Below are positions 56,804-62,387 of a stretch of 64,000 bases of DNA, in pieces. The notes beneath the pieces are model-generated. The model had not been told where the DNA came from and did no database searches. It worked only from the letters and a program-made list of their open reading frames with translations. The DNA comes from Oikopleura dioica (Eukaryota > Animalia > Chordata): positions 10,478,001 to 10,542,000 of the forward strand of contig OU015566.1 of NCBI GenBank assembly GCA_907165135.1. The letters run 5' to 3'. The translations under genes were made by a program, and so were the position numbers. Positions within the stretch are counted from its first letter, which is position 1. The number at the start of each line of letters is the position of its first letter.

Positions 56804-59800
56804 ATGGCTGGTGAGTTTACTGCCTCTTTTATTTTTTAAATATTTCCGAGCGAGATTTTTATGTAGCTCGGTAGATGGACATTCTTCATAGTACAGTTGA
56901 TATAATTTTGTTTTAATCTTGATACACCGATTCACGGAAATTATTAAGACGAACAACCTGCCGCCGCCCCCGCCGAAGAGGTGCCCGCTGAGGCTGCCCC
57001 AGCCGAAGAGGCCGCCCCCGCCGAAGAAGCCGCCCCCGCTGAGGAAGAGCAAAAGATCGACCCTGAGTACCCCAAGCCCGATCCCTTTACTGCTTCCGCT
57101 GCTGATGTCTCTGCTCCTGAAGCTGGCTCTGCTGTTGCCTACGTCAACGTAGCTGGTGGTATCCCTGATGCCGCTACTTCTGTTGTTGCTGACGGCTTCG
57201 AAGTCACTGGTGCTGCTCCTACTTTTACTTTGACGAAAAAGAACATTGGATTTGGCGATGCCACCAAGTTTTCTTACACTGCTACCTGTGGCGAAGAATC
57301 TGATAACGGAAGCTTCAGCATCAAGGTAACACATTATCACGTGATAAAAAGGTCAACGATACACTTTTATCACTTTTTAGTTTTCGTTCAACTATTCTCT
57401 AGGTCGGCCCAGCTGCTGCCTACGAATACGAAGGCAAGTACCCTAAGGGAGTTGCCGCCGAAGATGCTGAATTCCGAGCCGCTCTCCGAAAAGTCCAGAA
57501 ATTCTCTATCGGCAAGAAGGTTTCTGATGCTAAAGAAGATATTTGGGCTCTTCTCAAGTCCGCTAATCCTCGTGAATACGATAGAATCGCATTCAACTGG
57601 GGCATCAATGATTTGCGAAAGCTTTTGAAAACTCTTGCTAACGCTAAGAAAAACAACAAGAAGTCTACTTCTTTCCCAACTAAGCTTGACGATACTCAAT
57701 GCAGCAATATCGGTGACAAGATCACTCTCGCCGTCGTTACCGCTAATGAGGCCATGAATGTCAAGTGGGTATGTAAAATTGAATTCATTAGAATGGGTTT
57801 ATTTCAATCATTTAGAGCTTCAATGGCAAGGATGTCGGCAAGCTCGCCCGACCTCTCGCCAAGGGCTGCAACAAGCAGCTCATTATCGACTCTGTCGGTC
57901 TCGAACACCACGGTCAGTGGGCCGCTACTGTTGGTGAGGACAAGACCTGCTGTGAAGTTTTCGTCCGAAAACCAGCTGTCACTCTCACCTCTGGATTCTC
58001 TGATGTCCAGGCTTCTGCCGGTGAGGAGGTCACTTTTACCGCCACTATGTCCGCTGATGATGGTCGATACAAACTTCTTAAGGACGGTATCGAGTTCGGT
58101 ACTACCGACAAGATTTCTGTTACCCAGGAGGGTACCAAGATCACTGCTGTCGTCCACAAGATCACCTCCGAAGATTCTGGCTTCTACCAGATCAAGGTCA
58201 ACGGTGGCTCTTCTTTCGCTGAACTCATCGTCTCTGGTGCCGCTGAGGCTCCCAAACCATTGTACCAGATGAGCGTTTCTGGTGATGTTACTGTTGCTTG
58301 CGATCTTGCCGATGAAAAGGCCGCTGGCAAATGGTTCAAAGGAGGCAAGGCTGTCGCTGAATCTGATCGAGTTGTCATCGAGGCTGATGGAGTTTCCCGA
58401 AAGCTCAATATCTCTGCCTTCGCTGCGATTGACGTTGGTACATACGAGTTCAGAACCGAGGGTGCTGCCAAGCCAGCGACATCTTTCTCTGTGACTGCCA
58501 ACGGTCTTTCTACTTCCCTTGGGCTCCCACAGGTTGCTCTTTCCGCTGGCGATCTTGGCCTTACCACTCGAGGCACTGCTTCCTTTACCGTTGCTGCCGC
58601 TGAGAAGGTCGCTCTTACCTCTGAGGGCAAAGAAGTCTCTTTCGACGGTGGACGTATGAAGTTTGTCGAATCCCCGACCGCGATGATCATTGAGAACGCC
58701 TGGGCTACTGACTCTGGCAAATACGACTTCGGCGACAAATCTATCAACGTCGCTGTCTTCGATGTCCCCACTCAGCCTGGTAAACCCGTCATCTCCGACC
58801 TCACCGATGAGACCTGCCGAGTTGACTGGACCCCACCTAAGTCCAACGGTGGCTCGAACATTACCTCCTACACCGTTCAGCGAAAGCGAAAGGGAGAGAC
58901 TACTTGGGTCTCAGTTGGCTCTGCTACTCTCCACAACTACCTCGCCCGACGACTTGTCGATGGGCAGTCCTACCAGGTCCGAGTTATCGCTAACTCCGCT
59001 ATCGGCGCTGGCGAGCCCTCTGATGTCTCTGAACCATTCACTCCTCTTGCTCCTTCAGGACCAGTTACTTCTCTTCGAGCTGGCAAGCAGACTGATACTG
59101 CTATCGAACTCAAGTGGAACATTCCTGAAGAAATCGGTGCTGCTGGTATTGACGGATATGCCATCCAACTTCAGATCCTCCCAGGTGGTCTTCGAGATGC
59201 TGACCCCGCTGCCGCTACTGAGGAAGGCTGGAAGGAAGCTGTTGCTGGCTATGTTGACGCCACTGAGAGCTCTGTCAACCTTGTTCGACTGACTACTGGC
59301 AAGAACTACATGTTCCGAATGACCGCCAAGAACCAGGCCGGTTCCTCTTCTTGGGCTACTCTTGGTCCCGTCTGTTGCGCTGCTAGCGTCGAGGACCCCA
59401 AGATCCTTCTCCCACGAAACCTTAAGAAGACCCTCAAGATCAACGTCAATGATAAAGTCCACGTCAACGTTCCCTTCCAGGGAGCTCCCAAGCCAAAGGT
59501 TACCTGGACCAAGCTCGTCGAGGTCTGGCCCGAACCCATTCCAGCTGCTGAAGAAGGTGGTGAGCCCACTCAACCTCCAGCTGAGATCAAGGAAGAACCA
59601 CTTGATAGCGCATTCACCGTCCGAACTACTAATGACTCCTCTGTAATCTTTGTCCGAAACGCTTCTCGGGCTGAGACTGGCACCTACAAGATCACTGTCG
59701 AGGTACAGGATCTCTCTGCTTCCGCTACAATCGATATTGCCGTCGTCGATGTTCCATCTAAGCCAAGAAAGCTCCAGATTGTTGAAACCATCGGCACCTC

Positions 59801-60401
59801 TGTTCAGCTCCAGTGGGAAGCCCCCAAAGACAACGGAAATCTCGATATTCTCGGATACTCTGTTGATAAACGAGACAAGCGATCTGGCCCAGACAGTGAA
59901 TGGTATGTTGTCTATGACAAAGTTCGACACTGCAACGCTAATATTGACGAACTCATCGTTGGAAACGACTACCAGTTCCGAGTTCGAGCCATCAATGAAG
60001 TTGGCGCTGGAGAAGGCACTGCTACCAAAGAGTTCGCTACTATTGCCAAGGAAACAACTACCTACACTAAGCCCGCTTACCCAGAGATGAACTTCGACAT
60101 CACCCCCGAGTTCACTACTCCTCTCAACAACAGAAAGATCATGCTTGGCTATTCTGGTACTATCACCTGTGCTTTGAAGGCCAACCCCAGACCAAAGATC
60201 CGATGGTTCAAGAATAAGATGGAGATCATCGACAACCCCAAGTACAAAATGAGCTGGGGACAGGGTATCATTCAGCTTGAAATCCGACGCGCTCGACTTG
60301 GCGATGCTGGAACCTACACCGTTCAAGCTGAAAACGATCTCGGAACCGTTACTCAATCCTGTGAAGTTGCTGTCCGAGAGGCCCAGAACTTCAGTTTCTA
60401 A
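56804..60401 (+). CDS. MYBPC: Myosin-binding protein C (P/A/E-rich N-terminus, Ig, M-motif, Ig domains, FN3-FN3-Ig-FN3-Ig)
   Basis: ATGGCTG|gt micro first exon; PAEEAA repeats; the M-domain tri-helix EDIWALLKSANPREYDRIAFNWGINDLRKLLKTL; and the C6-C10 order of FN3/Ig domains ending NPRPKIRWFKNK...LEIRR. The last exon is about 2.6 kb. Confidence 0.9.
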
Positions 60402-60639: not shown

Positions 60640-60647
60640 TATAAAAG
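60640..60647 (+). promoter_or_regulatory. TATA box of the mucin-like gene
   Basis: TATAAAAG about 45 nt upstream of the ATG at 60691. Confidence 0.5.
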
Positions 60648-60690: not shown

Positions 60691-62332
60691 ATGAGAGAAT
60701 GGGCTCTAATTTTTATCAGCGGAATTTCATGTCAGTTCACGACTGTAGCTTTTTTTGACGAGTTCACGACAATCGATACACCTGATCTGACAACAACAAC
60801 TAATGCGCCAACAACTACTACAACAGGAACAACAACTAGCGTCCCAACGACTACTATAACTACTACAACAGGAACAACAACTCGCACCTTCGGGGGCACA
60901 GAAGTAGCGTTTACAACTGCCGCTTTTTTTGACGAGTTCACGACGATCGACACACCTGATCTGACAACTATTGAGCCAGCAACTCCTTCAACAGGAACAA
61001 CAACTAGCGTCCCAACAACTACTATCCCTACTACAACAGAAACAACAACTCGCACCTTTCAAGGCACAGAAGTAGCGTTTACCACTGCCGCTGTTTTTGA
61101 CGAGTTCACGACAATCGACACACCTGATCTGACAACAACTATTGAGCCAACAACTACTACAACAGGAACAACAACTCGCACCTTCGGAGGCACAGAAGTA
61201 GCGTTTACCACTGCCGCTGTTTTTGACGAATTTACAACAATGGACAATCTTGATACAACAACAACACTAGCAACAACTACTTCTACTGGCCTTGGATCCA
61301 CTGTTGGCTTCACTACTGATGTTGTTCCCGATGATGAGTTTACAACATCTGGCGGCTTAGGAGGCGCGCCTGGAACAACTGAAATGATTTACACAACAAT
61401 GCTCCCAACAACTACAACAACACAAATCACAACAACTACTACAGAGCTTCTCACGACGACAACATCTTCGGCGTCAACTATCGCAACTGATACGACTTCA
61501 ACAACCTTTCCTGAGTTTGACACTGACACAACAACTGCGGTAAATGGAGATGCAGGTGCTACTGGAATCGATCAATATGCACCAGGAGCAAATGCAGGAG
61601 AGCAAGTTTCGATGATGCCATACGGAGATGATGATCAAGCAGTTGCTGGCGCTTATGGCGATCCACATTTCATGGTCCGATCAGAGCACGGAGAGCCGAT
61701 CTGTTTCGATTACAACCCTCTTCTTGCTTCTAATAATATGCTTCTGCTTACTGATCCACGAACATCCCTTACTGTTCTTGCAAAACCAGAAGAGCGAGGC
61801 GATACTGGACGACTCTTCATGAGTGAATTGACCATCATGACACCAAATGCCGTTACTTTGACAATCAACTCTGCTGGTATTTTCCTCGACGGAGAAATCG
61901 TTTCAGAAGTCGGGGCAAAGAGTGGAATCCATGTCACATCCGATTTGACTTTCAGAACAACCTGGGCGAAAGACGGTAATCACGAGCATACAAACGTCGA
62001 AATCGAAGACGGTCCAATTTTCTTGATCAAAGGAAATCTCAAGAAGGAATCGCTTTCCTTTGCGATTATGGATGCTTCTGGAATCTCAAGAAAAGCAAAG
62101 GGAATTATCGGAGGTTTTATTGCGGACGATTCGTACATTATCCACAAGTCTAACGATACACCCACTCTTGGAGTTGTTCAAGCTGGGTAAGATCGATCGA
62201 TTTGATTTCCGTTGAAATAGAAAATATTCTAGCAAAAACTATGCATCCACTGAGTTGAAGCACTACCATCGCGAAGAAAAATGCTGGGTCATCGATGAAG
62301 AAGACGCCCTTCGAATGATCAGCAAAGTTTGA
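60691..62332 (+). CDS. Secreted Thr-rich mucin-like protein fused to an inter-alpha-trypsin-inhibitor heavy-chain C-terminal-like (GDPH) domain; oikosin-like candidate
   Basis: Signal-like MREWALIFISGISC; Thr-rich tandem repeats; AYGDPHFMVRSEHGEPICFDY...LLLTDPRTSLTV resembles ITIH DGDPHF..LCF..L..D..TG.TV. A second exon ends EKCWVIDEEDALRMISKV*. Confidence 0.8.
60733..61345 (+). repeat. Coding tandem repeat, 4-5 imperfect units of (EVAFTTAA[F/V]FDEFTTIDTPDLTT...TTTRTF[G/Q]GT)
   Basis: Units are visible at both DNA and protein level, with variable Thr-run length. Confidence 0.9.
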
Positions 62333-62387
62333 TTGCCTTTTTTTCATGTTGTTTTCTATGTTCTTTTTTACGAAATAAATTGAATAA

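Follow-up and report, generated by a model that had tools for sequence, protein, structure and literature searches.

A secreted threonine-rich protein of the larvacean Oikopleura dioica with a candidate self-cleaving end domain of the ITIH type

Cleavage at a GDPH motif proceeds through the motif's own aspartate, whose side chain attacks the Asp-Pro bond and leaves a C-terminal Asp anhydride (PMC8267560, PMC10880436). Mutation of the aspartate to alanine or asparagine, or of the histidine to asparagine, abolishes the reaction, and both residues are needed (PMC10880436). In ITIH3, a heavy chain of inter-alpha-trypsin inhibitor (ITI), the reactive anhydride is esterified to C6 of N-acetylgalactosamine (GalNAc) in chondroitin sulfate, while the same anhydride in FCGBP is only hydrolysed and acquires no cross-linked partner (PMC8267560). 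The fragments of FCGBP are held together by a disulfide from the first strand, and cleavage there stabilizes the VWD fold without any cross-linking (PMC8267560, PMC10880436). In ITIH3, ITIH5, and ITIH6, GDPH lies between strands 1 and 2 of a sandwich whose topology is that of VWD but which databases do not annotate as VWD (PMC10880436). Here we describe g2830, a gene of Oikopleura dioica at positions 60691-62332 (+) of a 64,000-nucleotide stretch of contig OU015566.1 (10,478,001 to 10,542,000, forward strand; hereafter the window). The gene is real and encodes a secreted, Thr-rich acidic protein with a GDPH-type end domain; taken as a whole, it is probably best explained as a secreted stalk that ends in a self-cleaving domain of the ITIH type.

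The protein begins with a signal peptide, continues with a stalk of 295 residues, and closes with a C-terminal domain of 214 residues, laid out as follows in window coordinates:

60691-62186, +: exon 1, codons 1-498 and the first two bases of codon 499 (open reading frame list; identical to CAG5106411.1)
60691-60738, +: predicted signal peptide MREWALIFISGISCQF, residues 1-16 (hydrophobic N-terminus; paralogues carry classic signal peptides at the same place)
60739-61623, +: Thr-rich acidic stalk, residues 17-311 (computed composition)
60748-61281, +: tandem repeats with periods of 168 and 126 nucleotides (Tandem Repeats Finder; 86-88% matches between copies)
61642-62186, +: exon 1 part of the ITIH-C-type (VWD-fold) domain, residues 318-499, with the conserved Cys338 in a CFD motif (Pfam, profile search, AlphaFold2 model, fold searches)
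61657-61668, +: GDPH, residues 323-326 (GDPHF, residues 323-327), read from the sequence, with the predicted scissile bond Asp324/Pro325 between 61662 and 61663
62187-62232, +: single intron of 46 nucleotides, GT-AG, across which the annotated protein reads through and which is absent from the transcript-like contig L013
62233-62332, +: exon 2, which completes the domain and carries the conserved CW motif (Cys516; profile match at 62225-62326; alignments)
62330-62332, +: stop codon TGA (sequence)

A 499-residue open reading frame at 60691-62190 (+) appears in the program-made list, and the spliced product is the annotated 531-residue protein P0001, which is CAG5106411.1 (Oidioi.mRNA.OKI2018_I69.chr1.g2830.t1) of the Okinawan Oikopleura dioica. 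A preliminary description, made from the letters of the window, had claimed this frame and its GDPH motif, and the motif is encoded exactly at 61657-61668. The same description had recognized a signal peptide and an N-terminal part of Thr-rich, acidic repeats, in agreement with the composition computed for residues 17-311.

Profile searches and predicted structure both place the C-terminal domain within the ITI_HC_C family. In Pfam, ITI_HC_C (PF06668) was the only match, with residues 367-484 aligned to profile positions 17-139 at E 1.4e-3. This is the family that the preliminary description had named for checking, but the score of 18.7 bits lies under the cut-off of 27. Three paralogues match the same family at consistent profile positions (E 5e-5 to 3e-4, 20.9-23.4 bits, all sub-threshold). 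When a profile of eight larvacean domains was searched against 1.8 billion representative proteins, 334 proteins were retrieved at E ≤ 1e-3, true ITIHs among them, and the domain is no chance motif. The retrieved proteins include four with VIT, VWA, and a full ITI_HC_C (P0114, 1.8e-10; P0131, 1.4e-9; P0138, 2.5e-9; P0148, 1.1e-8), together with P0073, in which Pfam finds ITI_HC_C and VWA without VIT (1.8e-15), and P0043, a 943-residue EGF-rich protein with the domain last (1.8e-21). In a joint alignment of larvacean and ITIH domains, D-P-H-F, C-F, a Leu, an Asp, GxxG, and the last Cys are invariant, followed by a near-invariant Trp. The profile match therefore takes in the GLLGQF-like signature and both cysteines as well as the cleavage motif itself. 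Every intact larvacean member keeps D, P, H, and F, as do the true ITIHs, while the flanks vary.

The other ITIH modules are missing, as had been said at the outset. Pfam finds no VIT match at E ≤ 10 in the 499-residue product of exon 1, the VIT loci of the genome lying elsewhere, and no VWA match in that product, where the Thr-rich repeat stalk occupies the corresponding region. Pfam VWD (PF00094) matches neither the g2830 protein nor five paralogues, and sequence searches of the PDB, whether started from the domain or from the family profile, gave chance matches only (AtFKBP42, E 0.35; H2B, E 0.24).

The predicted structure points to the same relatives. AlphaFold2, run on the family alignment for residues 312-531 of P0001 (model m9e6ef326c288), gives a confident beta-sandwich, with a predicted local distance difference test score (pLDDT) of 80 and a predicted template modelling score (pTM) of 0.80; the unstructured part (pLDDT < 50) is limited to the 12 residues that end at the Gly of GDPH. 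When solved structures were compared by VIA-align, VWD domains took all of the first 19 places (Z 8.5-12.4 over 131-150 aligned residues), after which Z falls to 6.4. The VWD chains come from VWF, MUC5B, Cypridina luciferase, FCGBP, MUC2, vitellogenin, and RGMB, and Foldseek is concordant. Against predicted structures, two comparisons were made, one with the Atlas's own model and one with the AlphaFold2 model of this analysis, with these template modelling (TM) scores:

ITIH5: TM 0.85 (205 residues aligned) with the Atlas model, 0.73 with the AlphaFold2 model
ITI_HC_C-only clusters: TM 0.70-0.74 with the Atlas model, 0.61-0.74 with the AlphaFold2 model
Plant Root_cap (PF06830) proteins: TM 0.71 with the Atlas model, 0.65 with the AlphaFold2 model
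Canonical VWD (SUSD2, MUC5B): TM 0.60-0.66 with the Atlas model, 0.54-0.60 with the AlphaFold2 model

ITIH5 is thus the best structural match, and together with the family profile and the shared invariant columns it upholds the proposed homology to the C-terminal part of ITIHs. The preliminary description had held that a plain VWD-type fold would refute its reading. The fold is indeed of the VWD type, yet the ITIH domain itself has VWD topology (PMC10880436), so ITIH type and VWD fold are not alternatives, and since ITIH5 is closest the fold alone does not make a clean test. By profile and model, the g2830 domain is a divergent member of the ITIH branch of the VWD fold. As a separate observation, the plant Root_cap proteins score above canonical VWD domains, and a deep link between ITIH-type domains and secreted root-cap proteins is possible on the predicted models.

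The stalk that precedes the domain is 39.3% Thr and 48.5% Ser, Thr, and Pro together over residues 17-311, with only 5.4% Pro. It holds 35 acidic (D and E) against 3 basic (K and R) residues, for a net charge of about -32, and no Cys. The term mucin-like acidic stalk is a fair description of this composition, and the stalk is probably heavily O-glycosylated. A hydrophobic-acidic motif, GTEVAFTTAA(F/V)FDEFTT(I/M)D, occurs four times in its repeats, with the core A(F/V)FDEFTT(I/M)D and runs of Thr between copies; in the Oikopleura dioica genome this motif was found in g2830 only. The aromatic and acidic residues of the motif could bind sugar or calcium. The exact start of the mature chain is uncertain, as the signal peptide may be cut anywhere from after Ser13 to after Phe16; Cys14 starts the mature chain if the cut falls after Ser13.

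The domain is not confined to g2830. The genome searched is a 64.3-Mb assembly of 19 contigs, in which the window is G000:C4:10478001-10542000. A search with the single domain gave 18 matches, and the profile gave 40 exon-level matches that resolve into about 20 loci, 18 of which were read. Paralogues with other N-terminal cargo, which the preliminary description had anticipated, are therefore present. All intact copies read (A/S)Y-x-DPHF and then ...CFD..., and the domain is always last, with variable cargo in front. One type of cargo is a signal peptide with 30-60 residues rich in Asn, Lys, Thr, or Gly (L002, L003, L004, L006, L010, L019); a second consists of EGF-like Cys-rich modules (L007, L020, L021, L025); and a third is a LamG region ahead of the domain in the Norwegian CBY33142.1. 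The long Thr-rich stalk is found in g2830 only, among the family copies found. A derivation of these genes from canonical ITIHs by loss of exons was considered and rejected, because neither VIT nor VWA lies near any of the approximately 20 loci.

Two further loci were noted. At G000:C5:3749523-3751744 (L002, L011, L012), two to three short family copies stand in tandem within about 2 kb, each with a signal peptide, a Lys/Asn/Thr linker, and a GDPHF domain; internal stops in some of the pieces suggest recent duplication and decay. At L026 (G000:C1:3114500-3120500, -; L026:2580-5585, 1483-1794, 885-1142), a canonical-looking gene encodes a hemicentin-GBD, a VIT, and a VWA on one long exon. In a putative gene model, this locus appears to run into a divergent ITI_HC_C through downstream exons that read ...SGLPALFNVNL...ACFDIGG... 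and ...GLLGQF..., with LPALF where ITIHs and the approximately 20 stand-alone genes carry GDPHF. As far as the sequence goes, the classical architecture may have given up the cleavage motif that the new ones retain.

That the motif stays invariant in about 20 paralogues whose flanks are very different speaks for a chemical role, and, by analogy with the characterized GDPH proteins, self-cleavage at Asp324-Pro325 is likely. In the proposed course of events, the domain would fold in the secretory pathway and position Asp324-Pro325, whereupon the side chain of Asp324 would attack its own peptide bond, form a cyclic anhydride intermediate, and break the chain. What follows should depend on whether the two pieces are held together. 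The whole 531-residue protein has three cysteines. Cys338 and Cys516 are the pair that the domain shares with ITIHs, and the sole upstream cysteine, Cys14, falls in the region of the signal peptide. Since residues 17-337 have no Cys, no disulfide from there can join the part before GDPH to the core, and the AlphaFold2 model predicts no first beta-strand ahead of the motif. With neither tether nor strand, cleavage should release the stalk, the pattern of ITIH rather than that of FCGBP, MUC2, and RGM, and such release is modestly favoured. The untethered stalk would depart with a new C-terminal Asp, and the domain would be discarded or become a separate pro-piece, as in ITIH. The short-lived anhydride would then either be captured by a sugar hydroxyl, in an ITIH-like ester to a glycosaminoglycan or other matrix glycan, or be hydrolysed by water.

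Hydrolysis is the outcome on which the nearest rival explanation turns. Here the cleavage would serve maturation only, stabilizing or freeing the sandwich, and the stalk and the domain would be separate secreted products or remain joined non-covalently, with no bond to glycan. This is a serious possibility, if not the favoured one. FCGBP offers the precedent, as its C-terminal Asp is hydrolysed and has no partner cross-linked to it (PMC8267560) and the cut stabilizes its VWD domain (PMC10880436), and the very short piece that many paralogues carry before GDPH suggests that the domain itself may be the working part. Set against this, the nearest relatives by both sequence and structure are the ITIHs, the one group with established ester transfer; no disulfide would join the fragments, again as in ITIH; and diverse cargo behind an invariant DPHF fits a delivery module.

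Several points weigh against a self-cleaving domain of the ITIH type with a stalk destined for glycan. The Pfam score is under the gathering cut-off, and the alignment given to AlphaFold2 was shallow, at 8 sequences. The FCGBP precedent suggests, by analogy, that hydrolysis and stabilization of the fold can be all that the chemistry does (PMC8267560, PMC10880436). A real difficulty is that in many paralogues GDPH is preceded by no more than 30-60 residues, which would be a strange cargo for a cross-linker; this observation keeps a purely maturational role alive. Two further points concern context: coupling in ITIH depends on the chondroitin sulfate that bikunin carries, and the search for Link-domain proteins turned up none (bikunin was not searched for); and three oligo-dT RNA-seq runs, which carry the species label with lineage and life stage unknown, had no reads on the domain and few partial reads on the Thr-rich repeats, which is weak evidence either way. 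The high secretory expression that had been suggested for the gene draws no support from these runs.

Covalent attachment of the stalk to a glycan, proposed by analogy with ITIH3, is rated unlikely. Acceptors that bear GalNAc are plausible because the genome is rich in chondroitin-type glycosyltransferase genes (Pfam CHGN), with roughly a dozen loci. The hyaluronan-transfer half of the ITIH pathway, which the preliminary description had mentioned for the ITI heavy chains, has no visible counterpart: the genome search found no gene with a Link/Xlink domain, a weak negative, as the search controls could not respond. One feature of the CHGN genes deserves separate mention. Two such loci (G000:C4:3452458-3453243, -, and 3461569-3462427, +) flank the EGF-containing GDPH paralogue L020 (C4:3454572-3455728), and one CHGN locus lies about 1.3 kb downstream of L020 on the same strand. 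The chance of one such adjacency is estimated at about 1-2%, assuming roughly a dozen CHGN and 20 GDPH loci in 64 Mb. L020 and the adjacent CHGN gene could be a co-expressed pair of substrate and enzyme.

Every few hours, a larvacean builds a large filter of cellulose and glycoprotein, the house. The preliminary description had linked g2830 to this structure, and nothing in the literature on oikosins ties the gene to either the house or the oikosins: there is no mention of GDPH, ITIH, LamG, or the g2830 architecture in the text and supplements of PMC3390340 or in a 2026 single-cell preprint, and a literature search for "inter-alpha-trypsin inhibitor" together with "Oikopleura" found nothing. 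The g2830 protein as a house component, made by the house-secreting epithelium, is a tentative assignment. Whatever the chemistry, the protein might instead belong to the pharyngeal or endostyle mucus filter, to gut mucus, or to the egg coat. This alternative is rated somewhat doubtful. The absence of any expression tie to the oikoplastic epithelium and of a GDPH- or ITIH-like domain from the oikosin literature is in its favour, as is the fact that mucin-like proteins are typical of mucous epithelia. The strong expansion of the family in a larvacean points the other way; so does the fact that 44% of the 80 known oikosins have no recognized similarity (PMC3390340), leaving room for members of the family among them. 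Relatives are moreover abundant in marine metatranscriptomes, on contigs of about 1 kb, which fits highly expressed secreted genes.

The most far-reaching version of a house role is a toolkit of about 20 genes that would deliver cargoes (a mucin stalk, EGF rods, LamG, short peptides), each with a reactive C-terminal Asp that is esterified to a house polysaccharide, either a glycosaminoglycan or a cellulose-associated glycan. This is unlikely. If true, the toolkit would be a general system for stapling protein to glycan outside the vertebrate ITI/hyaluronan pathway; to our knowledge, the vertebrate ITI system is almost the sole known source of covalent ester links between protein and glycosaminoglycan.

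Least probable is that the domain does not cleave at all and instead anchors the mucin-like stalk non-covalently in extracellular matrix or mucus as a VWD-like module for binding or oligomerization, which would suit the VWD-type fold (many VWD domains work by non-covalent or disulfide-mediated assembly) and the discussion of MUC2 D4, where GDPH is not cleaved in every context (PMC10880436), but which hardly explains why D, P, H, and F, the first and third of which are both required for cleavage in VWD (PMC10880436), are kept in every intact family member and in ITIHs while their flanks vary.

Over 61638-62009, a contig from a wild marine metatranscriptome is 97.8% identical to the gene; third codon positions account for 7 of the 8 differences, the signature of coding sequence under selection. 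The Logan contig L013 (ERR9850598_841187) contains an orthologue of the last 155 residues at 73% identity and, as the intron is absent, is transcript-like. It is chimeric upstream, with its first 800 or so nucleotides taken up by an unrelated open reading frame that is joined mid-domain in another frame, and so gives no information on conservation of the stalk. A word-indexed search for a full-length orthologue of 275-873 residues found none, with only the fragment P0008 close, and relatives outside annotated genomes are mainly marine metatranscriptome contigs of about 1 kb.

The gene is compact. The preceding gene ends at 60401, which leaves g2830 an upstream region of 290 nucleotides of its own, and the TATA box noted in the preliminary description is present as sequence. 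The flanking features, read from the sequence, are these:

60640-60647, +: TATA-like box TATAAAAG, 44-51 nucleotides upstream of the ATG
62374-62379, +: putative polyadenylation signal AATAAA, 42 nucleotides past the stop

The upstream neighbour (58047-60401, +) is a long open reading frame with Ig/fibronectin-III-like repeats, titin/twitchin-like by reading, that extends from further upstream.

What is new here is the combination of an ITIH-type end domain with a mucin-like stalk in a larvacean; no paper was found that links ITIH-type domains to larvaceans. A module freed from VIT and VWA has been fused to such a stalk and multiplied about 20-fold in a house-building animal. Should the family act as ITIHs do, it would supply a chemical explanation for the fixing of house proteins to polysaccharide, as well as natural self-stapling tags. 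Should it only cleave itself, it would widen the range of GDPH autoprocessing domains and offer a testable family for a house biology in which 44% of the known components are orphans.

Compared with the GDPH-containing VWD domains of MUC2, MUC5AC, FCGBP, SUSD2, and RGM, the g2830 domain shares the beta-sandwich (Z 8.5-12.4 to VWF, MUC5B, FCGBP, MUC2, and RGMB), the position of GDPH, and presumably the Asp-Pro chemistry, and it is attached to a mucin-like region, as in MUC2. It differs from them in lacking a Pfam VWD, C8, TIL, or CTCK match, an inter-fragment disulfide, and a predicted first strand before GDPH, and structurally it is nearer to ITIH than to the VWD domains that cleave at GDPH. 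The modules of gel-forming mucins (VWD-C8-TIL assemblies and a C-terminal cystine knot) have no Pfam match in the exon 1 product and, because D assemblies and the knot are lacking, g2830 does not encode a gel-forming mucin. With the oikosins, the protein has in common that it is secreted, probably heavily glycosylated, lineage-specific in architecture, and encoded by a compact gene; its architecture is not among the described oikosin domain types (PMC3390340). The Oikopleura dioica paralogues (L002-L025, CBY33142.1) share the C-terminal module and its (A/S)Y-x-DPHF junction and are all secreted, but in place of the g2830 stalk they carry EGF rods, LamG, or short Asn/Lys/Thr-rich peptides.

The closest comparison is with the ITIHs themselves. 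The likeness lies in the homologous C-terminal domain, the DPHF at the first strand, the CF...GxxG...CW pattern, and an upstream part without a Cys tether. The differences are the absence of VIT and VWA, the Thr-rich acidic repeat stalk as cargo, the sub-threshold Pfam score, and a setting in which no hyaluronan/TSG-6 context is visible for g2830 (the Link-domain search being a weak negative, with bikunin outside its scope), in a species whose own VIT and VWA gene apparently reads LPALF instead of GDPHF. Since VIT and VWA were tested for and are absent, the g2830 protein is no ITIH; judged from its sequence, it is like an ITIH precursor at its C-terminal end.

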